The notes beneath the pieces are model-generated. The model did not search any database, was not told the DNA's origin, and saw only the letters and a program-made list of their open reading frames with translations. The position numbers were made by a program, and so were the translations under genes. A stretch of 64,000 bases of DNA from Heterodontus francisci (lineage: Eukaryota), in the NCBI RefSeq assembly GCF_036365525.1, contig NC_090407.1:12653441-12717440 (forward strand). The letters are read 5' to 3'. Shown here one piece after another: positions 6,686-53,300 of this stretch. The stretch's first letter is position 1; the number at the start of each line of letters is the position of its first letter.

Positions 6686-8980
6686 CTGTAGTTAGCAACC
6701 TTGTGGATGTAACTCTGTTACAACTCCTGTTAATCATTATATTGACCTCATCTCTTTGGGTTGTGAGGGTTTACCTGCCCTATCTGGTTATGGCATGTGA
6801 GTCCACAAGAACTTAAAGACCATTAGGCATTTTTCTTAGATTGACTCAATCTACTCTTCTTACTGTATCCCTCAATCCCCTCTCGCCAGAAACACAACCA
6901 CTTATATTGTTCACTTCCCTTGTAACTTACTCGACAAATCTATTACCCCTTGGTAAAACAACTGACCTGACGTAACATCCCCTCTCACTCATAATATCCT
7001 CATTTTCAATTGTTTTTCAAAACCCTTTACTATATCAAAACATTTGCAGATTTTCTTTATATGACCTTGAAAACATCAATTAAGTAATCTTAAGGTTACC
7101 TCTTTTCAAAGTATTGAGAATGCTCAGTTACATGTACTGGAATACATATGCAACCATATCTTATAATGTCATTCCTCTGTGATTTATTCCACTGAAAAAT
7201 TCATGCAAGCTACCCTTGTAACTTAATGCTTTTAAATTGGATTTACTGGTGTCAATGCTGGCCACTCAGCCCTTGCATTTTTCATACAGACCATGAAATG
7301 TATGCCCTAGCACAACTAAGAATGTAGTGCACCAATCAGCTGATTCTTTTGTTTTCCCCCCATTCAGTAAAGTAGGAGCCTGTGGAATCAATGTTTACAA
7401 CATAGCCAGAACCAGACTTCTTCTAAAAAATAAATAACAGACATGGCACTTAAAGTATCACCTTGTTGATATTTCCAGGATATCCGTGTTCTGGTTCTAC
7501 CACGACCTTTCAACAACTTGTATGTTTAATCTGGCGAAAATATGCTGAGATGCTTCACTCAAAGGTGGAAAAAACAGATACCACGCAGGAGTTAGAAGCA
7601 AAGACCAAAGGCTAGGTCAGAGAGGGAGATTTGGAGGAGATTTATGAAGTTATGGAAAAATGTAGCAAGGTGGAAAGATTTAGGAAGTGAATTTCAGAGT
7701 TATGATAAGCGAAGGTTCTGCCAGTGGTAGTATGGAAAAGGGACCAGAGTTGAAAGACTAGCTAGTGAGAACTGGGACATAGATTTGGAAGAGGTTACAG
7801 AGTGGTCATGAAAGATTTGCAAATAAACTATTACAGTATATTAGACTTCTGAGAAACTGGTAAATTCTCAGAAGGGTTGAGGATTATTTCCTATAAAAAT
7901 GGGGTCATCCCTCTTACCGTCACCCTTTTAAAGTTATTTCCTATCCACTCTATCATTATCACTACTACCTAAAAATTTTTCTGTTATCACTTCCTGCTCT
8001 CTGTCCTCTCTTGTTCCTTCCTGTTCTCAATTCCTATTGACAATATTTGCTATCAGCTATTGTTATCATTTCCTCATGATCATTCTGTTGCTGCTAATTA
8101 TCCACTCTTTTATTGCTACTTTCATTTTAGGTTAGTTCCTTGGTTCCATTTTATGTCACAAATGTTTATAATGGAAATTCTTTCAGTCATAATTCTTTAT
8201 TATCATTATGAGAAACCTGGTTGAATGTCCAAGTACATCATCAACATTGAGGAGTGAAGGAAATGATGAGATAAATGCACACCCAGTGATGATGCCATCA
8301 TAAACTTTTATTTTAAAACCTGATGGTTGTAGGAGGAAAAGCAGACTCAAGGAGGTTAGAGGTTCTACCATTTTGCGGTGCTGGAAAAAACTGTTAGACT
8401 AGGAGGTGGTGAGATGAGTCTTCATGTCAATACAATGAGAATATCGAAAAGATTAATTCCTGTATTACAACAGTGACTATACTTGAAAAGTACTGCATTG
8501 GCTGGTAAAGCACGTTGGCATGTCTTGAAGTCATGAAAGGTGCTGTATATGTGCAGGGTTTTCTTACACAAAATGTTCAAAGGAGGAATCGTGTATTTGC
8601 AGATTAGGAAGAACAATAGAAGAAATTCAGAAGACCATTAACCAGTGATATTAATAGAATAGGTTGCAATAGAGAGTAAGAGGTTGAGGGTGGGTGGGGG
8701 AGATGAGAAAGGGATCATCTATCAGAAGACAAGATTTTGATTGTATCCCATAGTGTGAGATAGATGTTAGAAACACCTTTCCGTGTATGGCAAAAGTATT
8801 AAGGTTTGGGTTTTATAGAGGGTTAAGCGATGTTGAGGGGAAAAGAGGAAATCAAGCTTTACCAATGGAGGAGGTGAAGTTAGAGGACATAGTGAGGCCA
8901 AAAATATCAATAACTGGAGAATGATGAAAAGTGGAACCACGTGGGAATGATGATTAGACTTGGAGAGATGCAAAGAAACT

Positions 8981-9152
8981 GAGCTAGATTTTCAACTTGC
9001 TGCCTGGAAGTGAAACTGATGAGGTGGATTGGCTGCATATTATAGAAACTATCCAACTGTCATTTCCAATCAATGGAAATGGGTGGTTGCTATAACAGGC
9101 GGCTGTCTGCAGTGCCAGTTTCATGCCTAGGTGGCAAGTTGAAAATATACCT
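8981..9152. mobile_element. palindromic MITE, probably PIF/Harbinger-derived
   Basis: termini tagattttcaacttgctgcct / aggtggcaagttgaaaatata and central ttcca-atcaa-tggaa give a ~170-bp imperfect hairpin. Confidence 0.65.
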
Positions 9153-9342
9153 CTGTGGAGGATTGAACATGATTTTCATTGTCCATTGAAGGGCATTAGT
9201 AGGATCAAAGTGTGGTGATTCAGCCAGTACATTGCATGAGAATCTGTGGCTGTGTCCACTGAAGGAATGCAATGTGAATGGAAGAATCAATGAACCATGG
9301 CAGCTAATGCTCTTATTCTACAAGGGACAGCATTTTCAATCA

Positions 9343-9348
9343 TTTATT
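9343..9348 (-). terminator. candidate polyadenylation signal of the Ig gene
   Basis: AATAAA on minus strand about 70 nt downstream of the stop codon. Confidence 0.5.
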
Positions 9349-9415
9349 AACAAATCATACAATATTTTTCCAAACACATATTCCACAACCTAGTAAATAT
9401 AGATGCAGTTGCTAT

Positions 9416-10804
9416 CTATTGACTAATAAAAGTTACTGTTGAGCTTGATTTGTCTGGCAGCCAAGGGTTAGATATGACACAGGTGAACCGAGTTCCCTCA
9501 GCCACTGAAACATAGAGGCCACTTCTGAAATTGAAATATTCATCTGTCAACTTCATGACTGTTTTTGAGCGAGAGGTGATGTCTTTGCCATTATCTGCTA
9601 GCCAACTGATGCTTCCGAGGGGAAACCCTCCTTCAGTGTGGCAGATGAGAAACACATTGCGGAAGTTGGGAGAGTGTTTTCCATATGTGATTACTGGATT
9701 ACTATAGGGTGCTGCTACTCGAAGTTCCAAAAGAGCTTCACCAATTAACTTCTCTTTTTTTTTAACCCTACAGATATACTCTCCCATGTCCTCAATTGAG
9801 ATGTTTTTTATCTTCAAGTTTGGAGATCCATGCAAAAAGTCCTCCCAGTACAGGAAAGCCCGGTTCACATATCTTGGATTTTGATCAACTAGATTTTCCT
9901 CTTCATTTATGAAAGAATAGACCAAATACTCCTTGCTATTTGAATCCTTGTTGACCCAGTAGAAACCCAATTCAGCAATGGTGACCGGATCGCTCGCCGG
10001 AATAGAAACATCACATATTAGTTCAACATTACTTCCAACTATTCCCACTATATCCTTATATGGTGTAGAGACTGTGACACTTGGCAAAGGCAACACTGAA
10101 TCTACCAAGAAGTTTTCAATGTATTGATTCCAAACACTGCAGATGTACTTTACTCCCTTCTTGACCCTGACCACAAGAGAACTTTTTACGTCATATGTTT
10201 CGTTGCGTTGTTTTTCCGTAACAGTGTTTGCCTCTTGTGTAATGTCATCACCTGCAGCAATCCACTGAACAAGAGGCTCAGGAAACCCTTCCTTAGCCGC
10301 ACAGTTTATTGATACTTTGTCTCCTTCCACTACTTCTTTGGGTTCATAGTCTACAAAAATGTCCTTGAATGGTATACAAATAAAGAGAGTAACAGCGAGG
10401 CTCTTGATCCCATTAACATAACAAAAATAATCTCCACTGTCCTCAAGTATTGTTGGGTTAATGTTCAAGATGGATAAACTTGCATTGAGATAGCTGCCAC
10501 GCACTCTTGCTTTGAGCCTTTCAGACAGATATTGGACTACTTCCTCATTGGGACTGAATGAGTGATGGAGCACTCTCTCCAAGGTGTGGTCATCTGTGGT
10601 TCGTTCCCACTCAATATCAAAGGTGCCTGATTCTGATACTGTCTCACTTAAACTGCACAGTGCTGTAAATTGGTGACCTTCCTGTACTCCTACAACTGAT
10701 TTATGGCTAATCATAGTCGGATTCTTTAACCTTTCCACTCTTGTGCTTTGGAACCGCAGCAACAGATACAAAGCATGTAGGTAGAAAATTGGAAGCAGTC
10801 TCAT
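9416..10804 (-). CDS. B7-family (CD276/B7-H3-like) protein, signal peptide + IgV-IgC-IgV-IgC, no TM segment, single coding exon, 462 aa
   Basis: uninterrupted ORF; first ATG at 10804 gives a hydrophobic leader MRLLPIFYLHALYLLL; four Ig Cys pairs with Trp; EDSGDYFC and EDMGEYIC V-set motifs; B7-type DQNPRYVNR, LRVAAPYSNP, GFPEP/GGFP; acceptor ttattttcag|G at 10882/10881 upstream. Confidence 0.9.
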   Translation of the reverse strand: MRLLPIFYLHALYLLLRFQSTRVERLKNPTMISHKSVVGVQEGHQFTALCSLSETVSESGTFDIEWERTTDDHTLERVLHHSFSPNEEVVQYLSERLKARVRGSYLNASLSILNINPTILEDSGDYFCYVNGIKSLAVTLFICIPFKDIFVDYEPKEVVEGDKVSINCAAKEGFPEPLVQWIAAGDDITQEANTVTEKQRNETYDVKSSLVVRVKKGVKYICSVWNQYIENFLVDSVLPLPSVTVSTPYKDIVGIVGSNVELICDVSIPASDPVTIAELGFYWVNKDSNSKEYLVYSFINEEENLVDQNPRYVNRAFLYWEDFLHGSPNLKIKNISIEDMGEYICRVKKKEKLIGEALLELRVAAPYSNPVITYGKHSPNFRNVFLICHTEGGFPLGSISWLADNGKDITSRSKTVMKLTDEYFNFRSGLYVSVAEGTRFTCVISNPWLPDKSSSTVTFISQ

Positions 10805-12667
10805 GATCCTGTTGATAGTTGTGGCTTCAATGATTATGTCCACCACCTGGATTTTAAGTTCCCATGTTTTCCACCATTCACCTGAAAATAAACATAGTTG
10901 TCAGGGGAAATATGTTCTTTTGTCATATACATTGGGTTAAAAGGAATATGATATGTACACTACCCTATCTAGAATATAAAAAGATGCAACAAGGAAAGGC
11001 TTTTGGACCCATCAAACTACTTCCACATGCCATGGACAATCTACCCAAACATGGATTCAGCACGATGCATGTAATCTCCCTGAGCGATACTTCTTCAAAC
11101 ATAATCCTTGATCCTCAATGGTAATTGAACAAAATCCAGAATATTCATCACCCTTACATACCTAAAACCTAATCTTGGTCTGCTATCATCCAGCCAACAA
11201 TTCCACCCCCACCCCCCACCCCACCACTCCACAATGCTACCGAACAAAAAAACATTCACTCCATTCTGCTTCTTGACCCCATACTGTCCCACTGAATTTT
11301 AAAAGCAGTGGAGTGGGCTGGGCTAGGCAAACCAGCTGACCACCTTATTTCCCATCTCTCCAACCACTGACCCAAAGGATCACCAAAAAGTGGGGGCACA
11401 TGCTGAGGCAGTGGTTGCTGGTCTAACGATAGAAGAGGTAGGGCCTAGTAGTGATAATCTCTCCTTCTACAATGACTCCCAGCCCTCTTTGCTTGAAAGG
11501 CCTCCTTCCAGTTTGAGATCTTGAATTAAAATTTTTCTGAAATCTTGCCCCCTTTAAAGGTCCCCCTTCTCCACCAAGTTGCTCCGCGACAGGTGTTCCA
11601 CTGAAATGTTTGCATCGTTAGATGATCACAGGAATGCTTACACATAGCACTTACTGATCACTTAGGTTTTAGATGAAAATGCACTGAACAGTATACCCTG
11701 CCATTAAGGGCCAATCTCAAACTAATGATCAAAAAATACTTGCATTTATATAGCACCTTTCACAACTGTAGGACAACCCAAAATGCTTTACAGCCAACAA
11801 AGTACTTTGAAGTGTAGTCATACAAACATATGAATTAAGAGCAGGAATAGGCCACTCGGCCCCTCGAGCCTGCTCCACTATTCAATAAGATCATGGCTGA
11901 TCTGATTTCCGGTCTAGCCCCGATAACCTTTCACCTCCTTGCTTATCAAGAATCTATCCACCTCTGCCTTAAAAATATTCAAAGACTCTGCTTCCACCGC
12001 CTTTTGAGGAAGAGAGTTCCAAAGACTCAAGGCCCTCCGAGAGAAAAAGTTTCTCCTCATTTCTGTCTTAAATGGGTGACCCCTTATTTTTAAACAGTGA
12101 CCCTAATTCTAGATTCTCACACAGAGGAAACATCTTTTCCACATCCACTCTGTCAAGACCCCTCAGGATCTTCTATGTTGCAATCAAGTCACCTCTTACT
12201 CTTCCAAACCCCAGCAGATGCAAGCCTAGCCTGTCCAACCTTTCCTCATAAGACAGCCCGTCCATTCCAGGTATTAGTCTAGTAAACCTTCTCTGAACTG
12301 CTTCCAATGCATTTACATCCTTCCTTAAATAAGGACACAAATACTGTACACTGTACTCCAGGTGTGGTCTCACCAATGCCCTATATAACTGTAGCATAAC
12401 CTCCCTACTTTTGTATTCAATTCCCTTTCAATAAACGATAACACTCCATTAGCTTTCCTAATTACTTATATACCTGCATTCTAACCTTTCGCGATTCATG
12501 CACTAGGACACTCAGATCCCCCTGCATCTCAAAGCTCTGCAATCACTCACCATTTAGATAATATGCTTTTTTATTCTTCCTGCCAAAATGGGCAACTTCA
12601 CATTTTCCCACATTATACTCCATTTGTCAGATTTTTGCCTACTCACTTAGCTAACTATATCCCTTTG

Positions 12668-12917
12668 CCTTGACCAATTAGAGTCAAGCTGCCTGGCTTA
12701 AATTTCAAACAAAGCTTGACAGTTAACTGTCAGTCACTGTAAACTGGTGCATTCTCCATGGCAGCACCTCTACCAATCAGAGTTCACTTGCCAACCAATC
12801 AACACTCTCTTCTCGTGCAGTATAAGTTGTTGATTTATCTTACATTGGTTATTCCTGCGTAGTGTCCTGATGAGTGCAAGACGAAAAGCTTTGACAACAT
12901 GTCTCTATTTTCAGCAA
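12668..12917 (+). mobile_element. Penelope-type pLTR fragment (family B) inserted in the CR1 RT
   Basis: interrupts CR1 just after FADDTKIG; carries CCAAT boxes, a TATA-like tataag and a hammerhead motif. Confidence 0.7.
12863..12896 (+). ncRNA. minimal type I hammerhead ribozyme motif
   Basis: tgtc-CTGATGA-gt(gcaag)ac-GAAA-agct-TT-gaca: intact core, helix I tgtc/gaca, palindromic helix III AAGCTT. Confidence 0.7.
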
Positions 12918-14187
12918 TTTATGACCTATCTTTGTGTCATCAGCAAATGTAGCAACCATACCTTCGATCCCTTCATCCAAGTCAGTTATATAAATTGTAA
13001 AATGTTGAGGCCCCAGCACAGATCCCTGTGGCACATCATTCGTTACATCTTGCCAACCAAAAAACGATCCATTTATGCCTACTCTCTTTTTCCTGTTAGC
13101 TAGCCAATCTTCTATGCATGCCAATATATTACCCCCAACACCATGAGCTTTTATTTTCTGCATTAACCTTTGATGTGGCACCTTATCAAATGCCTTTCGG
13201 AAATCTAAGTACAGTACATTGACTGGTTCTCCTTTATCCACAGCACATATTACTTCTTCAAGGAACTCAAATAAATTGGTTAAACATGATTTCCCTTTCA
13301 CAAATCCACATTGACTCTGCCTGATTACCTTGAATTTTTCACAGTGCCCTGCTATAACATCTTTAACAACAGCTTCTAACATTTTCCCTATGACAGATGT
13401 TAAGCTAACTGGCCTGTAGTTTCCTGCTTTCTGTCTCCCTCCCTTTTTGAATAAAGGAGTTATATTCACTATTTTCCAATCTAATGGAACATTTGGAGTC
13501 TAGGGAATTTTGGAAAATTGAAACCAACGGATCAACTATCTCACAAGCCATTTCTTTTAAGACCCTAGGATGAAGCCCATCAGGAACCAGGGACTTGTTA
13601 GCCCACAGCTCCAACAATTTGCTCGGTACCACTTCCCTGGTGATTGTTGTAACATAGGAAGCCAATTTGCGCACAGCAAGCTCTTACAAATACCAATGTA
13701 AGAATGACCAGATAATCTGTTTTTGTGATGTCAATTGAGGATAAATATTGGCCAGGACACTGAGGATAACTCCCCTACTCTTCTTCAAAATGAGACTATG
13801 GGATCCTGAGAAAGAAGACAGGGCCTCAGTTTAAGGTCATAACCAAAGGTTGGCACTGCCACCAGTACCACACTAGGGCATTAGTCTTGTTTTTTGTGTT
13901 CAATTGGGATTTGAACCCACAACTTTTAAAGTCAGAAGCAACAGTGCTACTAAGTGAGCCATGATATGTACTTGCTGGTGTTTTACATGTTCTCCATTAT
14001 GTAATCATGGTGAATGGTTAACATTGAGAAAAAATAGAATGAAAAGAACTATTTTTGAAAATTGATCTCACTCAGGCCAATAGTTATTGAACTATAATTA
14101 GCCTCAGTCCCTGGACTAGGGAAGCAAAGAGGAAAATTCAGTCAGCAATCTCACTCCTGATCACTATCTAAGAACCGTGTACACATG

Positions 14188-23404: not shown

Positions 23405-26062
23405 CTTCTTCTTCTTTGGCCTCCTTGTCCCGAGAGACAATGGGTAAGCACCTGGAGGTGGTCAGTGGTTTGTGCAGCAGCGCCTGGAGTGGCTATAAAG
23501 GCCAATTCTAGAGTGACAGACTCTTCCACAGGTGCTGCAGATACAATTGGTTGTCGGGGCTGTTACACAGTTGGCTCTCTCCTTGCGCTTCTGTCTTTTT
23601 TCCTGCCAACTGCTAAGTCTCTTCGACTCGCCACGCTTTAGCCCCACCTTTATGGTTGCCCGCCAGCTCTGGCGATCGCTGGCAACTGACTCCCACGACT
23701 TGTGATCAATGTCACAGGACTTCATGTCATGTTTGCAGACGTCTTTAAAGCGGAGCCATGGATGGCCGGTGGGTCTGGTACCAGTGACGAGCTCGCTGTA
23801 CAATGTGTCCTTGGGGATCCTGCCATCTTCCATGCGGCTCACATGGCCAAGCCATCTCAGGTGCCGCTGGCTTAGTAGGGTGTATATGCTGGGGATGTTG
23901 GCCGCCTCGAGGACTTCTGTGTTGGTAGTACGGTCCTGCCACCTGATGCCAAGGATTCTCCAGAGGCAGCGAAGAAGGAATGAATTGGGACGTCGCTCTT
24001 GGCTGATGTACGTTATCCAGGCCTCGCTGCTGTAGAGCAAGGTACTGAGGACACAGGCTTGATACACTTGGACTTTTGTGTTCTGTGTCAGTGCGCCATT
24101 TTTCCACACTCTCTTGGCCAGTCTGGACATAGCAGAGGAAGCCTTTCCCATGCGCTTGTTTAATTCTGCATCGAGAGACAGGTTACTGGTGATAGTTGAG
24201 CCTAGGTAGGTGAACTCTTGAACCACTTCCAGAGTGTGGTTGCCGATATTGATAGATGGGGCATTTCTGACGTCCTGTCCCATGATGTTCATTTTCTTGA
24301 GGCTGATGGTTAGGCCAAATTCATTGCAGGCAGCCGCAAACCTGTCGATGTGTCTCTGCAGACACTCTTCAGTGTGAGATGTTAATGCAGCATCGTCAGC
24401 AAAGAGGAGTTCCCTGATGAGGACTTTGGTCTTCGCTTTTAGACGGGCAAGGTTGAGCAACCTGCCACCTGATCTTGTGTGGAGGAAAATTCCTTCTTCT
24501 GAGGACTTAAATGCATGTGAGAGCAGCAAGGAGAAGAAGATCCCAAACAGTGTAGGTGCAAGAACACAGCCCTGTTTCACGCCGCTCAGGATTGGAAAGG
24601 GGTCTGATGAGGCGCTGCTATGCTGAATTGTGCCTTTCATATTGTCATGGAATGAGGTGATGATACTTAGTAGCTTTGATGGACATCTGATCTTTTCTAG
24701 TAGTCTGAAGAGACCACTTCTGCTGACGAGGTCAAAGGCTTTGGTGAGATCAATGAAAGCAACATAGAGGGGCATCTGTTGTTCACGGCATTTCTCCTGT
24801 AGCTGGCGAAGGGAGAACAGCATGTCAATGGTGGATCTCTCTGCAGGAAAGCCACACTGTGCCTCAGGGTAGACACACTCAGCCAGCTTCTGGAGCCTGT
24901 TTAAAGCGACACGAGCGAAGACTTACCCCACTATGCTGAGCAGGGAGATTCCACGGTAGTTGTTGCAGTCACCGCGGTCACCCTTGTTCTTATAGAGGGT
25001 GATGATATTGGCATCGCGCATGTCCTGTGGTACTGCTCCCTCATCCCAGCACAGGCAAAGCAGTTCGTAGAGTGCTGAACGTATAGCAGGCTTGGCACTC
25101 TTGATGATTTCAGGGGTAATGCTGTCCTTCCCAGGGGCTTTTCCACTGGCTAGAGAATCAATGGCATCACTGAGTTCCGATTTTGTTGGCTGTATGTCCA
25201 GCTCATCCATGACTGGCAGAGACTGGGCTGCATTGAGGGCGGTCTCAGTGACAACATTTTCCCTGGAGTACAGTTCTAGGTAGTGCTCCACCCAGCGGTC
25301 CATTTGCTTGCGTTGGTCAGTGATTGTGTCCCCTAATTTAGATTTGAGGGGGGCGATCTTCTTGATGGTCAGCCCAAAAGCTCTCTTAATGCCATCATAC
25401 ATCCCTCTGATATTTCCTGTGTCAGAGGCCAGCTGAATATGACTGCATAGGTGTTGCCAGTAGTCATTTGCGCAGCGCCTGGCTGTTCTTTGTGCAGTGC
25501 TTCTGGCTAATTTAAGTGCTACGGATGTTAACTCTCTGGGGGCTTTCTTGTAGTTCAGCAGTGCGATGCGCTTAGCGGCTATGACAGGTTCCAGCTCTTC
25601 AATGTGAGATTGAAACCAGACTGCATTCCGCTTCACACAATTTCCATAGGTGGTCATTGCTGAGTCATAGATGGCGTCTCTAATGTGGGCCCACTTGGTC
25701 TCTGCATCCCCTGTGGGAGTGTTTTGAAGGGCTTTTTCAAGTGAATTTAGAAACTTGCGTGACAGCTGTGGATGAGAAATTCTGCTAGTGTTGATGCGTG
25801 GGCGGCCCTTCTGCTTGGAGTGATGCAGCTTCTTTGGTTTGAGGCTAACCTTGCTGCACACCAGGGGATGGTCGGTGTCGCAGCCCACACTGTGGAAGCT
25901 GCGTGTGACTTGAACACTGTTTAAAGAGGCTCGCCTTGTGATGATGAGGATCGGCTGGTGCCAACGACATGATCTTGGGTGCCTCCAAGAAACCTGGTGA
26001 CAGGGTTTAGTGTGAAAGAATGAGTTGGTGATGCAGAGGTTATGATAGGTACACAACTCAAG
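23405..26062 (-). mobile_element. RTE LINE, non-inverted 3' part (end of APE, RT, C-terminal C2H2-like motif)
   Basis: ORFs 24923..26098 and 23462..24823 are in frame, separated by one TAA; NYRGISLLS, FIDLTKAFD, GVKQGCVLAP, LFADD; (GAA)n tail at 23405. Confidence 0.95.
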
Positions 26063-26899: not shown

Positions 26900-28030
26900 C
26901 CTGTGTAGGGGCCCCATCAACCCCACTGCCTAGTGGGTGTCGCGGGAGAGACCAAGGCTAAGGGAGTCAACCCTAACAGAAAATCCGGAGCGGAACCCCA
27001 AAGGCGGTCATGTGTCACCTTTGGCATGTTTCCAGCAGTTCCTGCAGCCACACTGGTGCCAAACGTCGTGCTTTGCACTCCTTTGGACCCCACCAGGAAG
27101 GCCGAGAGAGGAGTTTTGTCACTTGGGCAACTCACAACCTCCATACATCCGCCCAGGCATGTGCCATGGAGAGGTCACTCCATAGTCGCCTCACAGCGAC
27201 CAAATCAACACGGAAGGCAGCAGTTACGGGTTATAAGTCCAGCTCAATTGGCGTAGAGATTGGCCTTTGACGGTGGGAGAGGTCATCGCATCTCACTGGA
27301 CAGCTACCGCCCGCCTCAAACCGGGCAGCCCCTGGTCAGTAAGGTTCTGTCCCGCCACAGTCCACCTGCTTCAATGGGTCTTGGAGCTCAGGGTCATTGC
27401 CCGACAAGTGGACTGTAACACCGCACCAAACAGCACGACCAAAAAAGGAAAGAAGGTACCAGCCCTTCGTTTTGCAAGCTGGAACGTCAGAACCATGTGT
27501 CCTGGCCTGTCGGAAGACTTTACACAAATCAACGATTCTCGGAAGACCGCCATCATCAACAACGAGCTCAGTAGACTCAATGTGGACATTGCGGCACTTC
27601 AGGAGACACGCCTCCCTGTAAGCGGATCTCTAAGAGAGCAAGACTACACCTTCTTCTGGCAGGGTAGGGATCCTGAAGAACCAAGACAGCACGGAGTGGG
27701 CTTCGCCATCAGAAACTCTTTGCTCAGCATGATAGAGCCACCCTCAAATGGCTGGGAACGCATACTGTCCATCCGACTGTTCACCGCCTCTGGTCTAGTA
27801 CACCTACTCAGCATCTATGCACCAACACTCTGCTCCCCACCTGACGCTAAAGACCAGTTCTATGAGGAACTCCATAATATCATTAGTAGCATCCTCAACA
27901 CCGAACACCTTTTCCTGCTGGGGGACTTTTATGCCAGGGTTGGGGCTGACCATGACTCATGGCCCTCTTGCATTGGGCGCTATGGCATTGGAAGGATGAA
28001 TGAGAATGGACAGAGACTGCTTGAGTTGTG
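26900..28030 (+). mobile_element. RTE LINE, inverted 5' part (5' UTR + APE endonuclease)
   Basis: ASWNVRT, DIAALQETR, HGVGF, IYAPT, LLGDF, NENGQRLLELC; ends where the minus-strand half begins. Confidence 0.93.
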
Positions 28031-29299
28031 TTCTGTGCTGTAAATTCTATATAATTATGTGTACTTATCTCCCAAATAAATAACAATTTAGCAGTTCCAG
28101 AGCCTCATTTCAGGTTATCTCAAACTACTCAGATAAACAATGATTATGGTGAGATTGACTCTGAGCCTGTTGAACCCGGGTTGGTTTTATCTTTGCATTA
28201 GCTGATAACCTCAGGTCAGCTCTATCTTTCACTTTACTAACCTTGGGCCAGCTTGTTGCTGGATTTATGTCTGGGTTTGGAGATTTTAGATTTCTCTGAG
28301 TTTGATGAGTTGAGTTGTATCTGACTCTTGAGTTTGGTTGTGGGTTGATCTATCTGTGGATTTACTGAGGTTGCATTGGGTCTTTCTCTGGATTATGGGT
28401 TTTCAATTTTTTCCAGTTTGACATGAAAATTATTTGTACAACTTTGATACAAATTTAAATGTAAATTAAGGAGGCAAACATACAATGTTCATTCAGTTTT
28501 TGTGCCTAATTTTTAGAGTTTTTTCACATTTTGTTTTTAGTTTTCTTTTTATTTATGGGGTGTAGGTGTCACTGGCAAGGCCAGTATTTATAATGAAAAG
28601 TAAAAACTTCAGCATAATTACAACCTCGAAAGATTGCTAATATAGAATGTTGATGGTGTATGGAATGCAGAACTTAGAACTTTGGCTATCACCTCATGCT
28701 TTTGACTAGTTTGGGCCCAGATTCTAGTTCAGACCAGTTACCCTCCCATCCTGTAACCTCTACAATAGCCACGATAGTTAAACAAGTCATGGGAAAATCT
28801 ATTGAAGAGATACCAAGTCTATTGCCTGCTATTAAGATGATACTGAGAATCCCTAATTGCCCTTAAGTGTAAAAATAGGAGAAAATAACTGAGGAAAAAT
28901 CGACCCCAAAAACCTGGGATCAATTCAGAGATAATTAGTTTTTTTTACTTTGTACGTTACTCAGACGCAAGAAAAAAGAGACTTAAAAAACAGTCAATCT
29001 AAATCACAAGCCACAATTATTTACAAGGTTCACCATCACCACTTTTATGGAGTTCATCATCAAACCCTCAACCTTTAGTAGTTTCCTTCTGCCTGTGTAT
29101 GCTGGAGTGTTTAAGTGCCCTTCATTCCAAATGTAGCTGCAATGTCTTTAATCTCAATCAAGATGTGCCCCTTGGATGTTATCTGAAGCCCAATTATTAT
29201 ACCACAGAGTTTATCATCATTGGATAAAGTAAATTGCACATCAAAATGTTTGATGTAACTTCATTATCTTAGCCACTAGCTATAAAAATTAAACTAAAA

Positions 29300-39336: not shown

Positions 39337-42297
39337 GGCCTGAATATTTTGGGGCCCCGAAGTTGGGAACAGAGGTGGGGTGGGGGCGGGGGCGGTGGTT
39401 GGGAGGGCCGAAAAGACTGGTGCTGGGCAGCTTGTCAATTTCAAGATGCCGATCCCGGCACCAGCAATAATCACCGGGGCTGGGGGATGGCAAGGCAGGA
39501 ATCTTGCTCTCCTCCCAATTGAGGCCAATTAATAGTATTGAAAAGCTCATTAAAAGCTTGTCAGGATTGAAGTTCAAATTTTTCAAGGGGCAGAGAGGTA
39601 ACACTCCCTTCTGAAACAGATCAGCTGAGAGGAGGCAGGTACAGAGTGTGGAGATAGTCATGGCTGCTCCAGGGCATCACTCTGGCCCAAAGAGGGTTAG
39701 TGAGGCATAGGGGGACTCAGCTCTTGGTAAGTGAATGCCTTTGGCACAGTGCAGGTGGCAGGGAAAGTGGGCATGCACCACCCAGGCATTGAATGGGGTC
39801 AGCACCCCCCTGACATTACAGGGACAGAAGAGCAGGAGACAAGGCTGCCAAGGAAAATTGTGTGGCTGCCTCCCCAGAAGGAAGGCTCCAGCTGGCAATG
39901 ATAGGCAACATGCTCCATAGGAAGGGCAGAACCCTGGGTATCAGGAGAGCTTGGGAGAAGAAAGAGGGGCAGGAAGGCAACGGAGGCCAAACCCTCAACA
40001 CAGGATCTACAGCTGAAGACAGAGCTACCTGGAGAAGGATGAGAATCAGTGCTGCAGGAGACTGCGACTCTCCAGGCAGATGGCCACAGACATCTGTGCC
40101 CTCATTGCCAAAGACTTCGCACCTCACAGCACTGGTCGCCATGCCCTGCCAGTGGCCGTCAAATTCACTGTGGCCTTGAACTTCTTTGCTTCTGGCTCCT
40201 TCCAAGGATCAGTTGCAGACCTTAGTGGCATCTCGCAAATGGCTGCACTCCACTGCATCTCTCTGGTCACTGATGCCCTCTTTGCCAGAGCTGGACAGCA
40301 CATTCATTTAGTGACAACACCGAGCTTCACAGCGATAGAGGTATTGCCTCCATCACTGGATTCTCCCAGGTGCAGAGCATCATCAATTGCACCCATGTGG
40401 CCATCAAGGTACCCAATGAACAGCCAATCAGATCCATCAACAGGAAGGGCTTCCACTCCCTCAACATCCAACTGGTCTGTGACCACAACAAGAGCTTCCG
40501 CCGTGTGTGTTCACTTTCCTGGCAGCTGCCATGACACCTTCATCCTGTGCCAGTCCAAGCTGCTGCAGATCTTCAGTCCAACTCCCAAAGTGCATGTATG
40601 GATCCTAGAGGACAAGGGATATCTCTTGAAGAGATGGCTACTGACCCCTCTGCAGGAGCCCCAGATAGAGGCACAGAGGCGATACAACCAATGCCACCTG
40701 TCAGTAGGACAACCATTGAGCTGGCCATCGGGCTTCTGAAAATGCGATTCCAGTGCCTGAACTGGTCAAGTGATGCCCTCCAATATCCTCCTGCAAGGGT
40801 TTCGGTCATTGTGGTGGTCTGCTGTGCTCTCCATAACATGGCTCTCCAGAGATGTGTGGACTTGAGGACAATGAGGCCTTGGAAGGAGTCAGTTCATCTG
40901 TGCAGGAGGAGGAGATGCGAGAGGAGGAAGAAGCAGAGGGAGATGACGCTGAATAGAGAGGTAGGGGTTGGCAACATGTCCATATATGGACACCGGTGTC
41001 CGTAGTAAAAATTGAGATCTGTGGTAATTTATTCAAAAACTTATGACTTATAAACTGTCGATAAAAGACATAATTTGTCTTTGCACATATTGCAATTGTG
41101 ATGCAGATGGGCCAAATTTGGCTTCTGCTTCACCCGCAAACTGACAATGACACAAAGATTCTACGGTAACAACAGTTAACAGTAACAATAGTTACTGTAG
41201 AATCTTGATGACACTGAACCAAAGAAGCTTTGTTATCCAATCAGACAAAGTGTTAGTTATGTTTGCATTTTTCGTGTTTTTTTCTTATCCGTGGGAAAAA
41301 AACATGGCGTCGAATTCATATAAAGTTTGGGAAAGAGAATTTGTTTTGTAGCTGTGACAGCGAGGTACTTTCGAAAACATTAGAGCGACTTGAATTTATT
41401 ATTATTAGCTTGCTAGCTGACTAGGACAGCTATCCAATCGCTTTTTCCAGTGTGGAAAATTATTTGCTGTTTTACTGTTTGAATGACAGAAAGTCACTTC
41501 TCAGTTCTGGTTTTTATCATGTAATGGTTTAGCTAGTTGGCTACATGCTAACACAGCATTAGCACATGGTGTAGCTAGCTCTATACTATCTACAAAATAA
41601 TTCGCATTGGCATTACATACTGTTTTGCTTGCTAGCTAGCTAATACAGTTGTGCTGCTCTCCATTGATGTTTGTATGCTTAGCTACTTTATTTATAGGGA
41701 CAAATGTGTTTTAAATTGGACTGTGTTTTGATGGCATTAAGTTGGCTATCACTTTATATACAGATTAATTGCCCCCATGTCTGTGGCTGAGTCAATAATT
41801 TTGGTAAGTGTCTGTGGTGCAACATGTTAGTGCCGATCCCTGCAGAGAGGTGCCCATGCTGCATGATGAGGTGGTCTCCTCCTGCCACCTTCGGGGAAGA
41901 GGACCTCTGCCTCATGCCCTCCAGCATTAGATCCAGGTTGGCATCAATGAAGCAAAGGGCTGCCCTGCCCCAGGTGCCAGGCCTCCTCCTCCCCTGTGAC
42001 ATCTCACTTTCCTCTGGTGCAGTGGAAGACTTTGGCACAAACCACAGATCTCTCCCTCAGGACAACCAGCAGCCTCAGTGATGACTGCCATGGGAATCTA
42101 AATGAGTCCCACACTTCATCTTACCTGCCTCCGATCCCACTCCAGTGGCTCTAAGTGGACAGGAAACCTGTCTCCATACTAATTAAGGGCTTTCCCACAC
42201 AAAAATCTGAATTTTAATCAGTTTCCCACTTGAGGCGGTTTCTGACCAAATACAAACACAGCTCCTATTTCCCACCTCCATGACAAAAATTCAGCCC
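39337..42297 (+). mobile_element. PIF/Harbinger transposon, internally deleted: transposase pseudogene (+, about 39900-40950) and Myb/SANT partner 5' part (-, about 41850-42040)
   Basis: VALNFFASGSFQ, FPGSCHDTFIL, EDKGYLLKRWLLTP, IELAIGLLKMRFQCL, CCALHNMAL; termini ggcctgaatatttt / aaaaattcagccc. Confidence 0.9.
40962..41842. mobile_element. non-autonomous hAT-type element nested in the Harbinger
   Basis: TIRs TAGGGGTTGGCA / TGCCGATCCCTG; 8-bp TSD tagagagg (40954-40961) / cagagagg (41843-41850). Confidence 0.8.
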
Positions 42298-50305: not shown

Positions 50306-53300
50306 GTTTTTTTTTATTCATTCATGGGATATGGGCGTTGCTGGCTATGCCAGCATTTATTGCCCATCCCTAATTGCCCTTGAGTAGGTGGTGGTGAGCT
50401 GCCTTCTTGAACTGCTGCAGTCCATGTGGGGTAGGTACACCCACAGTGCTGTAGGGAAGGGTGCCAGGATTTTGACCCAGCGACAGTGAAGCAACGGCAA
50501 TATCGTTCCGTCAGGATGGTGTGTGATTGGGAAGGGAACTTGAAGGTGGTGGTGTTTCCATGCATTTGCTGCCCTTGTCCTTCTAGTTGGTAGAGCCCGC
50601 GGGTTTGGAAGGTGCTGTCTAAGGAGCCTTTGTGCGTTGCTGAAGTGCATCTTGTAGATGGTACACACTGCTGCCACTGTGCGTCGGTGGTGGAGGGCGT
50701 GAATGTGAGTGCATGGGATAGCAATCAAGCGGGCTGCTTTGTTCTGGATGGTGTCGAGCTTCTTGAGTGTTTTTGGAAATGCACCCATTCAGGCAAGTGG
50801 AGAGTATTCCATCACACTCCTGACTTGTGCCTTGTAGATTGTGGCAGGCTGTGGGGAGTCAGGAGGTGAGTTACTCACAGCAGGATTCCTAGTCAAAACC
50901 TGCTCTTGTAGCTACAGTATTTTTATATGGCTACAATTCAGTTTCTGGACAATGGTAGCCCCTAGGATGTTGATAGTGGGGGATTCAGCGATGGTAATGC
51001 CATTGAATGTCAAGGGCAGATGGTTAGATTCCCTCTTGTTGGAGATGGTCATTGCCTGGCACTTGTGTGGCGCAAATGTTAATTGCCATTTATCAGCCCA
51101 AGCCTGGATATTGTCCAAGTCTTGCTGCATTTCTACACGGACTGCTTCAGTATCTGAGGAGTCACAAATGGTGCTGAACATTGTGCAATCATCAGCGAAC
51201 ATCCCCACTTCTGACCTTATGATTGAAGGAAGGTCATTGATGAAGCAGCTCAAGATGGTTGGGCCTAGGACACTACCCTGAGGAACTCCTGCAGTGATGT
51301 CCTGGAGCTGAGTTGATTGACCTCCAACAACCACAACCATCTTCCTTTGCACTAGGTATGACTCCAACCAGCGAAGAGTTTTCCCCCCGATTCCCATTGA
51401 CTTGAGTTTTGCTGGGGCTCCTTGATGCCATACTCAGTCAAATGCTGCCTTAATGTCACTCGCACCTCACCTCGAGTTCAGCTCTTTTGTCCATGTCTGA
51501 ACCAAGGCTATAATGAGGTCAGGAGCTGAGTGGCCCTGGCAGAACCCAAACTAAGCATCGCTGAGCAGGTTATTGTTAAGCAAGTGCTGCTTGATGGCAC
51601 TGTTAATGACACCTTCCATCACTTTACTGATGATTGGCAGTGGACTGATGGGACAATAGTTGGCTGGGTTGGACTTGTCCTGCTTTTTGTGTACAGGACA
51701 TACCTGGGCAATTTTCCATATTGCCGGAGAGATGCCGCTGTTGTAGCTGTACTGGAACAGCTTGGCTAGGGGCGCAGCAAGTTCTGGAGTACAGGTCTTC
51801 AGTACTATTGCAGAAATGTTGTCAGGGCACATAGCTTTTGCAGTATCCAGTGCCTTCAGTCATTTCTTGATATCACGCAGAGTGAATCGAATTGGCTGAG
51901 GTCTGGCATCTATGATGCAGGGGACTTCAGGATGAGGCCGAGATGAATCATCAACTTGGCAGTTCTGGCTGAAGATTGTTGCAAATGCTTCTGCCGTATC
52001 TTTTGCACTGATGTGCTGGGCTCCCCCATCATTGAGGATAGGGATATTTGTGGAGCCACCTCCTCCAGTTAGTTGTTTAATTGTCCACCATCAGTCATGA
52101 CTGGATGTGGCAGGACTGCAAAGCTTAGATCTGATCCGTTGGTTATGGGATCGCTTAGCTCTGTCTATCGCATGCTGCTTACGCAGTTTGGCACGCAAGT
52201 AGTCCTGTGTTGTAGCTTCACCAGGTTGACACCTCATTTTGAGGTATGCCTGCTGCTGCTGCTGGCATGCCCTCCTTCACTCTTCATTGAACCAGGGTTG
52301 GTCCCCTGGCTTGATGGTAATGGTAGAGTGGGGAATATGCCAGGCCATGAGGTTAGATTGTGTTTGAGTACAATTCTGCTGCTGCTGATGGCCCACAGCG
52401 CCTCATGGATGCCCTGTTTTGCATTGCTAGATCTGTTCGAAATCTATCCCATTTAGCACAGTGGTAGTGCCACACATCATGATGGAGGGTCTTCACAAGG
52501 ACTGTGCGGTGGTCATTCCTACCACTACTGTCATGGACAGATGCATCCACAGCAGGCAGATTGGTGAGGATGAGGTTAAGTATGTTTTTCCCTCACCAAC
52601 TGCCGCATACCTGGTCTAGCACCTATGTCCTTTAGGACTCGGCCAGCTTGGTCTGTAGTAGTACTATCGAGCCACTCTTGGTAATGGACATTGAAGTCCC
52701 CCACCCAGAATACATTCTGCACCCTTGGTGTTCACCATGGAGGAATACTGACTCATCAGCTGAGAGAGGGCAGTACTTGGAATTAGCAGGAGGTTTCCTT
52801 GCCCATGTTTGGCCTGATGCCATGAGACTTCATGGGGTATGAAGTCGATGTTGAGGACAACCAGGGCAACTCCCTCCCGCCTGTATACAACTGTGCCACC
52901 ACCTCTGTCCTGCTAGTGGGACAGGACATATCCGGGGATGGTGATGGCAGTGTCTGGGACATTGTCTGTCAGGTATGATTCCGTATGTATGTCTATGGCA
53001 GGCTGTTGCTTGACTAGTCTGTGGGACAGCTCTTCCAACTTTGGCACAAGTCCCAGATGTTAGTAAGGAGGATTTTGCAGGGTTGACAGGGCTGGATTTG
53101 CCACTGTCATTTCCTGTGCCTAGGGTCGATGCTGTGTGGTCCATCCGGTTTCATTCTTTTTTTTATTGACTTCATAGCAGTTAGATGCAGCTAAGTGGCT
53201 TACCCATTTCAGAGTACATGTAAGAGTCGACCACATTGCTGTGGGTCTGGAGTCACATGTAGTCCAGCCGAGGTAAGGACAACAGATTTCTTTCCCTAGA

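Follow-up and report, generated by a model that had tools for sequence, protein, structure and literature searches.

A probable functional single-exon gene for a secreted four-immunoglobulin B7-type protein, an ancient CD276 paralogue, in the horn shark

The stretch of horn shark (Heterodontus francisci) DNA analysed here, 64,000 nucleotides (nt) of contig NC_090407.1 (positions 12,653,441 to 12,717,440), hereafter the window, carries on its minus strand at 10804-9416 an open reading frame (ORF) for a protein with four immunoglobulin (Ig) domains. We consider it probable that this is a functional single-exon gene for a secreted, soluble B7-type four-Ig protein and an ancient paralogue of CD276. 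RefSeq and UniProt already contain proteins of its orthologues, to which automatic annotation has given inconsistent names ('CD276 antigen-like', 'butyrophilin-like protein 2', 'uncharacterized protein LOC102356954/LOC103184258', 'hypothetical protein scyTo_0009958'). A full-text literature search gave no identifier match and no description of a secreted four-Ig B7 protein, and an earlier mention in a 2012 paper on B7 evolution is possible. The novelty lies in a constitutively soluble B7 paralogue with a single-exon coding sequence and an ancient V-C-V-C layout; the gene had been predicted already, and no paper describing it was found. The database names need correction, as the proteins are neither CD276 orthologues nor BTNL2.

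Coding sequence and domain architecture

In an ORF scan of the window, the minus-strand frame 10846-9416 is the sole long ORF between 8.5 and 12 kb. Its first ATG, at 10804, opens 462 codons closed by a TAG at 9418-9416, and the translation of 10804-9416 ends in ...SSSTVTFISQ (C-terminus ...SNPWLPDKSSSTVTFISQ, directly before the stop). The leader and the four Ig domains, in the order V1-C1-V2-C2, all lie within this one uninterrupted frame. The features of the gene and its immediate flanks are the following:

10881-10895, minus: candidate 3' splice site, TGTTTATTTTCAG followed by G, with the AG at 10883-10882 (motif only)
10854-10877, minus: short upstream ORF in the 5' leader, MVENMGT and stop, whose ATG corresponds to the start of the Narcine model
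10745-10804, minus: start codon and predicted signal peptide, residues 1-20, MRLLPIFYLHALYLLLRFQS, aligning with the paddlefish and coelacanth leaders
10709-10744, minus: leader-V1 linker, residues 21-32, 0-50% identity among orthologues, predicted local distance difference test (pLDDT) of the AlphaFold2 (AF2) model below 50
10379-10708, minus: V1, diverged IgV, residues 33-142, Cys50-Cys128 (Pfam V-set; V1C1 clade 100/100)
10091-10378, minus: C1, IgC, residues 143-238, Cys168-Cys222 (Pfam C2-set_3, C1-set, Ig_3)
10376-10378, minus: Cys143, unpaired, within the linker joining V1 to C1, the same residue standing in all 7 cartilaginous-fish sequences
9713-10090, minus: V2, CD276-like IgV, residues 239-364, Cys264-Cys345 (Pfam, CD276 match), the most conserved domain
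9419-9712, minus: C2, IgC, residues 365-462, Cys388-Cys442, SNPWL motif, end TVTFISQ (Pfam, alignment)
9416-9418, minus: stop codon TAG, two residues past the last beta-strand (ORF, alignment)
9343-9348, minus: AATAAA polyadenylation signal (motif only), 67 nt past the stop

Pfam assigns V-set to residues 37-131 and to a second stretch, and C2-set_3, C1-set and Ig_3 to residues ~155-230 and likewise to a second stretch, with scores far over the curated cut-offs. The protein contains nine cysteines, eight of which form four pairs at canonical Ig spacing (50/128, 168/222, 264/345 and 388/442), the ninth being Cys143, and it has three N-X-S/T sites. When 23 full-length V-C-V-C relatives were included in the alignment, AF2 returned four confident Ig folds with a mean pLDDT of 85.7; the model obtained with only seven cartilaginous-fish sequences (pLDDT 57) was too poor to use. 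The paired IgV/IgC ectodomain with intradomain disulfides that is typical of B7 proteins is thus found by Pfam, by the cysteine pairs and by AF2, and the one-exon layout of leader and four Ig domains proposed by an earlier reading of the sequence alone (the sequence-only reading) is borne out. Judged on the sequence, a 462-codon frame in DNA of 41% GC that is colinear with ten orthologues is far beyond chance.

The missing membrane anchor

A type I membrane anchor, which is a trait of B7 proteins, was not found: in none of the ten orthologues is C2 followed by a hydrophobic segment. Over the last 120 residues, 19-residue hydropathy never exceeds 1.05 in any of them, whereas canonical CD276 of catshark, basking shark, bowfin and a snake has transmembrane (TM) segments that reach 2.6-2.9. 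There is also no hydrophobic C-terminal tail that could serve as a glycosylphosphatidylinositol (GPI) signal. In the alignment, the proteins of all ten species end within 1-4 residues of the same last strand, with the C-terminal tails SQ, S, SE, NE, DD, GD, DQ, NKNR, NKNM and VW. The stop directly after the last C-domain strand and the AATAAA placed by the sequence-only reading about 70 nt further on are both confirmed, the latter lying at 9348-9343. Hydropathy and alignment, with the anchor absent and the stop position conserved across ten species, likewise speak for its view of the protein as apparently secreted.

Placement within the B7 family

Searched against all solved structures, the whole protein finds CD276 as the top match (E 3.7e-45), its C1-V2-C2 part being aligned to C1-V2-C2 of human 4Ig-B7-H3; the top PDB sequence matches are CD276, ICOSL, PD-L1 and BTN. 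For the V1C1 half alone, too, CD276 is the top match (E 6e-21), with PD-L1 and BTN3A ranking lower, and V1 alone gives zero CD276 matches at E<1e-3 in BLASTP. Matches to CD276 reach E ~1e-23 to 1e-26 for V2C2 as against ~1e-10 to 1e-13 for V1C1, and identity between the two halves amounts to 26%. These values uphold the earlier description of a CD276-like V2-C2 and a strongly diverged V1-C1. In Foldseek, the predicted model is closest to human 4Ig B7-H3 (9ly6_A, E 2.8e-28, 439 columns), and either half can be superposed on the two-domain proteins PD-L1, BTN and B7-H6 at TM 0.7-0.8. By PDB matches, fold and tree, the protein is therefore nearer to B7 members than to other groups of the Ig superfamily (IgSF). 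VTCN1, HHLA2, ICOSL and PD-L1 were not part of the V-C tree, and the ranking of ICOSL and PD-L1 comes from the PDB searches only.

The tree was computed with IQ-TREE from 50 V-C units cut by a hidden Markov model (HMM) from 34 proteins. The ten V1C1 units form one clade and the ten V2C2 units another (both 100/100), and within both the branching order is coelacanth / sturgeon + paddlefish / (chimaera, (sharks, rays)). Since each of the two clades spans both lineages, the duplication is older than the split between cartilaginous and bony fishes. V2C2 groups with canonical CD276, the separate shark CD276 included (92/79), and the V1C1 clade stands alone on a long stem. The V-C units of mouse-lemur 4Ig-CD276 are within-species sisters (98/100), as are those of every BTNL2-like protein; the tree thus agrees with the earlier proposal that the VC duplication is independent of that of mammalian 4Ig-B7-H3, and it separates the duplication from that of BTNL2 as well. 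The maximum-likelihood tree separates V1C1 and V2C2, and an arrangement of the two as sisters was not rejected by the approximately unbiased (AU) test (p 0.36). V1C1 may have arisen by duplication of V2C2 or from another B7 gene.

In sharks there is also a distinct protein of 299-325 aa, named 'CD276 antigen homolog' (P0145, P0116), that has a TM segment and clusters with tetrapod CD276, apart from the V2C2 clade of the window family. One-to-one orthology with CD276 is therefore not found, and the window gene is a paralogue. Membership in the BTN/BTNL group is not found either, as the butyrophilin-like units group together (96/93) and neither half of the window protein falls among them. The differences from the named relatives follow the same line. 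CD276/B7-H3 (human 4Ig, PDB 9ly5/9ly6; 2Ig in most vertebrates) shares the IgV-IgC(-IgV-IgC) ectodomain, but it is a type I membrane protein with a TM segment and a tail and has, as is established, one exon per domain, whereas the window protein has no anchor and a single-exon coding sequence. Moreover, the V-C pairs of mammalian 4Ig CD276 are near-identical products of a recent duplication, whereas the halves of the window protein were separate before the cartilaginous/bony fish split. BTNL2, whose name several orthologues bear in RefSeq, shares the V-C-V-C ectodomain without B30.2, but it is membrane-anchored, its V-C units are within-species sisters, and the window protein lies outside its clade.

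A further group was seen in the same tree. Two proteins of bichir and reedfish named 'CD276 homolog' (P0080, P0094) have a V + V-C layout and form a clade of their own on a long branch (100/99), separate from canonical CD276 and from the window family; this polypterid clade may be another unnamed B7 lineage.

Orthologues and age of the gene

A word-indexed search found orthologues 56-80% identical to the window protein in Pristiophorus, Scyliorhinus, Chiloscyllium, Rhinoraja, Narcine and Callorhinchus. A profile search of 1.84 billion cluster representatives added only two further full-length colinear clusters, one whose 14 members come from paddlefish and four species of sturgeon and mostly measure 463 aa (P0010), and one from coelacanth, 474 aa (P0012/P0171). 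RefSeq entries of the family include XP_041129161.1 (paddlefish), XP_058857980.1 (sterlet), XP_005986153.2 (coelacanth) and XP_007900360.1 (elephant shark). The weaker profile matches were canonical CD276, butyrophilin-like proteins, or long multi-Ig proteins that score by summed repeats, and a word-based search with V2C2 only returned nothing but fragments of the same secreted four-Ig family. The colinear orthologues are 457-493 aa long, and those of paddlefish, sturgeon and coelacanth are 35-39% identical to the window protein.

The ten-species alignment is colinear across all four domains. Between the window protein and the paddlefish, sturgeon and coelacanth proteins, identity amounts to 28-30% in V1, 38-51% in C1, 37-40% in V2 and 39-40% in C2; V2 is 63% identical to that of the chimaera. 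In the ten species 83 columns are invariant; the eight Ig cysteines belong to them, as does the SNPWL motif (with N446, P447, W448 and L449). Cys143 is invariant in the 7 cartilaginous-fish sequences and absent in paddlefish, sturgeon and coelacanth. V1C1 and V2C2 have been under similar constraint since the jawed-vertebrate ancestor, and the divergence of V1C1 is old and not an ongoing decay.

The clear orthologues in paddlefish, sturgeons and coelacanth date the gene to the jawed-vertebrate ancestor. They contradict the suggestion of the sequence-only reading that the gene is a speciality of cartilaginous fishes, and the colinearity from cartilaginous fishes to coelacanth corroborates its description as old and conserved. 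No orthologue was found in the predicted proteomes of teleosts, holosteans, bichirs, lungfish and tetrapods, in some of which single-exon genes may have been overlooked by the annotation.

Among the sturgeon proteins P0159-P0169, two intact copies of 463-466 aa each are present in Acipenser oxyrinchus and Huso huso, and at least three intact copies each are listed for A. ruthenus and A. sinensis. This multiplicity would fit the retention of duplicates after the sturgeon-paddlefish genome duplication. A metagenome scan yielded a single weak match, a 1-kb JGI contig (L001) that encodes at 175-501 a V-like Ig stretch with 30% identity to V1 (E 3e-7); this contig holds no orthologue and is probably host or eukaryote DNA in the metagenome.

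Signal peptide and 5' leader

The N-terminus, MR followed by LLPIFYLHALYLLL and RFQS, resembles a cleavable leader and aligns with the canonical leaders of paddlefish (..AYS/A, the slash marking cleavage) and coelacanth (..AQS/K). The cleavage site was placed by eye. In the AF2 model, residues 5-16 are helical and residues 17-34 form a disordered stretch.

An AG at 10883-10882 follows a run of pyrimidines, and an exon start at 10881 is possible. The sequence-only reading had taken this site as an acceptor that implies a separate non-coding upstream exon; the motif is present and the upstream exon is putative; orthologue models read through the equivalent position. Three orthologue models have N-terminal extensions, which are translated DNA 5' of the conserved MR(L/P)L start. 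Those of Pristiophorus (P0001) and Scyliorhinus (P0002) pass straight through the acceptor equivalent: the Scyliorhinus model begins with MFIFR.., which corresponds to the window ATG at 10895 read across the candidate acceptor, and the Pristiophorus model has ..FNHGEWW.. where the window has ..FSGEWW... The Asn-His codons of Pristiophorus cannot supply an AG there. The model of the electric ray Narcine (P0005, MVEKWEVKI..) starts at the equivalent of the upstream ATG at 10877. As far as sequence can tell, either the orthologue models are ab initio in this region or leader and gene are continuous. Two TATA-like elements in the minus-strand upstream region, TATATT at 10978 and TATATG at 10929, are candidates for promoter elements.

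The 5' leader (10805-10895, minus) contains upstream ATGs at 10895 and 10877 that are conserved in sharks and one ray. It is less conserved than the protein at larger distances (electric ray vs window, ~48% for the leader against 69% for the protein, counted from alignment pseudo-translations), yet it is strikingly similar among sharks. The region may be a regulated leader with upstream ORFs, or its similarity may be a mere effect of slow shark evolution.

Origin of the intronless state

In B7 and butyrophilin genes, each domain has an exon of its own. The arrangement of B7 genes, one exon per Ig domain with phase-1 introns, is not seen in the window, where the coding sequence is a single uninterrupted ORF; the introns of the parent family are lacking, as is expected of a retrogene. 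Since all the domain-boundary introns (at least 4) are gone at once, retroposition of an mRNA for a soluble form would be the most economical origin on the sequence evidence.

Proposed role and alternative explanations

The product would be a secreted glycoprotein of ~440 residues after removal of the leader, with the order IgV-IgC-IgV-IgC. The V-C-V-C layout and the loss of the anchor would already have been present in the ancestor of cartilaginous and bony fishes. Released into body fluids, the protein could act as a soluble B7-type ligand or competitor, the faces of its V domains engaging a receptor of the IgSF, as in other B7 proteins, and with two V domains it would be at least bivalent. 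Cys143 may form covalent dimers, and because it is absent in the bony-fish orthologues, such dimerisation would be limited to cartilaginous fishes. The circulating ectodomains sB7-H3, sPD-L1 and sCD80/sCD86, which engage or block a receptor, are the probable likeness of the window protein. These isoforms, however, are by-products of splicing or shedding of membrane genes, whereas the window gene can encode a soluble form only and has done so since the jawed-vertebrate ancestor. What the soluble B7 by-products do physiologically in mammals is a matter of debate.

Several points weigh against the gene being a functional source of a secreted B7-type protein. The run search returned no RNA run containing the locus, and the names CD276 and butyrophilin are absent from the supplements of the nurse-shark plasma and shark skin-mucus proteomes, which is a weak negative. 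The secreted state is derived from sequence and gene models and not from protein data, and position -3 of the predicted leader is occupied by Phe, which is unusual for a cleavage site. To our knowledge, the receptor of CD276 itself is unsettled, and both the receptor and the function of the window protein are purely inferred. As regards retroposition, no parent gene was recognised, and there is no poly(A) remnant near the gene (no A-run after the AATAAA) and no flanking target-site duplication, direct repeats being only of chance level (15-21 nt); such marks of insertion are not expected to persist for ~450 million years.

Three runs of one sample that were compared with the locus are low-depth and repeat-dominated contig sets, in which one 161-nt contig matches 9853-10013 exactly; the contig sets of the same sample also leave traces at 11080-11347, outside the gene. 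These runs look like low-pass genomic DNA and not RNA, and they are silent on transcription. The argument for functionality is thus one of conservation: an open colinear frame of 1.4 kb in at least ten species, together with several intact copies in each of the sturgeon species listed, cannot be neutral.

The same secreted four-Ig protein could have a non-immune role, in adhesion, in the matrix, in reproduction or in a sensory organ, with the B7 fold reflecting ancestry only. We regard this as unlikely, though a serious alternative. No tie to immunity by expression or binding was found, the proteome supplements lack the database names, and the distribution follows slow-evolving lineages that keep many ancestral traits and does not follow any particular immune feature. 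Its nearest relatives by sequence, fold and tree, on the other hand, are all immune co-signalling ligands, CD276 first and then PD-L1, ICOSL and BTN. The host lineages all retain ampullary organs. A role in electroreceptors was considered and rejected, as neither the list of genes enriched in the paddlefish lateral line, which also counts against a non-immune role more generally, nor a sturgeon study contains a matching gene.

A more specific version of the B7-type reading is speculative and should be held with considerable doubt. A retroposed mRNA copy of a soluble B7-H3-like form would have been fixed before the cartilaginous/bony fish split and would since then have acted as a circulating checkpoint ligand or antagonist, a 'humoral B7'. 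Its partner could be an orphan receptor of the CD28 family (CD28H-like or CD28X), and its loss in teleosts and tetrapods would belong to the same pruning of an ancestral co-signalling network. Such additional CD28-family receptors have been described in cartilaginous and basal bony fishes and are absent in human (PMC11599192). Their lineage ranges do not coincide exactly with that of the gene, and they are a lead and not evidence.

A further alternative is that the locus is a gene for a membrane protein, some or most transcripts of which would be spliced near the end of C2 to an unrecognised downstream TM exon, so that the stop would mark a minor soluble isoform. In favour of this, a GT lies within the last Ser codon (ATTA/GTCAAT, the slash marking the exon end), and the nearer of two hydrophobic frames 3' of the gene, HVVPLFIILQLLIFLASLCPL followed by GTAAAG, is located at ~8943-8881, ~470 nt downstream. 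The donor, however, is weak, matching the consensus at 2/7 positions outside the GT, and it is impossible in Chiloscyllium, where the residue of that codon is Asn, and in Rhinoraja and Callorhinchus, where it is Asp, because Asn and Asp codons cannot provide the GT. The hydrophobic frame was rejected as a TM exon, as it lies beyond the AATAAA, has no pyrimidine-rich acceptor and is preceded just upstream by an in-frame TGA. Moreover, ten models from independent pipelines and lineages all stop directly after C2. Splicing through this site to a TM exon, which the sequence-only reading had named as one outcome that would overturn it, is thus not supported, with the donor not conserved and no usable acceptor near the hydrophobic frame, and the membrane-protein explanation is highly improbable.

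It is barely credible that the horn-shark locus is a processed copy that looks intact but is not transcribed, a silent relic: the failure to find an RNA run and a gene-poor neighbourhood rich in transposable elements would suit it, but a 462-codon colinear frame in at least ten species that diverged up to ~450 million years ago, with the eight Ig cysteines and 75 other columns invariant, is not compatible with neutral decay. Free of frameshifts and premature stops, the horn-shark copy also retains all the invariant residues.

On the preferred reading, that of a functional gene for a soluble B7-type protein, a soluble-only, four-domain B7-H3-like gene would have been kept for ~450 million years in slow-evolving fish lineages and lost elsewhere. 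If the protein is expressed and binds a receptor, secreted co-signalling ligands would have been part of the ancestral jawed-vertebrate toolkit, and the gene would be a natural way into the still obscure receptor biology of the B7-H3 branch. The gene would also supply an example from the B7 side of the pattern of early diversification and later pruning that is known for CD28 receptors (PMC11599192).

Genomic surroundings

The gene lies in a unique block of 3 kb flanked by high-copy repeats at 8400-8565 and 11616-12400, the depth of which in the contig sets ranges from thousands to 170,000. Inverted arms of 61 nt are found at 8505-8565 and 11731-11791. Repeat contigs that stem from elsewhere join 8494 to 11826, skipping the gene and giving the look of a 3.3-kb insertion. 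Since one repeat with inverted copies on the two sides accounts for this joint, it was rejected as evidence of an insertion. There are no paralogous Ig exons elsewhere in the window, and no host gene besides the B7-like gene was recognised in the 64 kb. The other features are remnants of mobile elements:

40080-41005, plus: two overlapping ORFs of a DDE_Tnp_4 (PIF/Harbinger-type) transposase, split by a frameshift
12852-13469 (minus), 23465-24823 (minus), 27267-28040 (plus) and 50915-51397 (minus): remnants of long interspersed nuclear elements (LINE), three with RVT_1 and one with Exo_endo_phos (apurinic-type endonuclease)

Because its ORFs are split by the frameshift, the element at 40080-41005 is a decayed DNA transposon.

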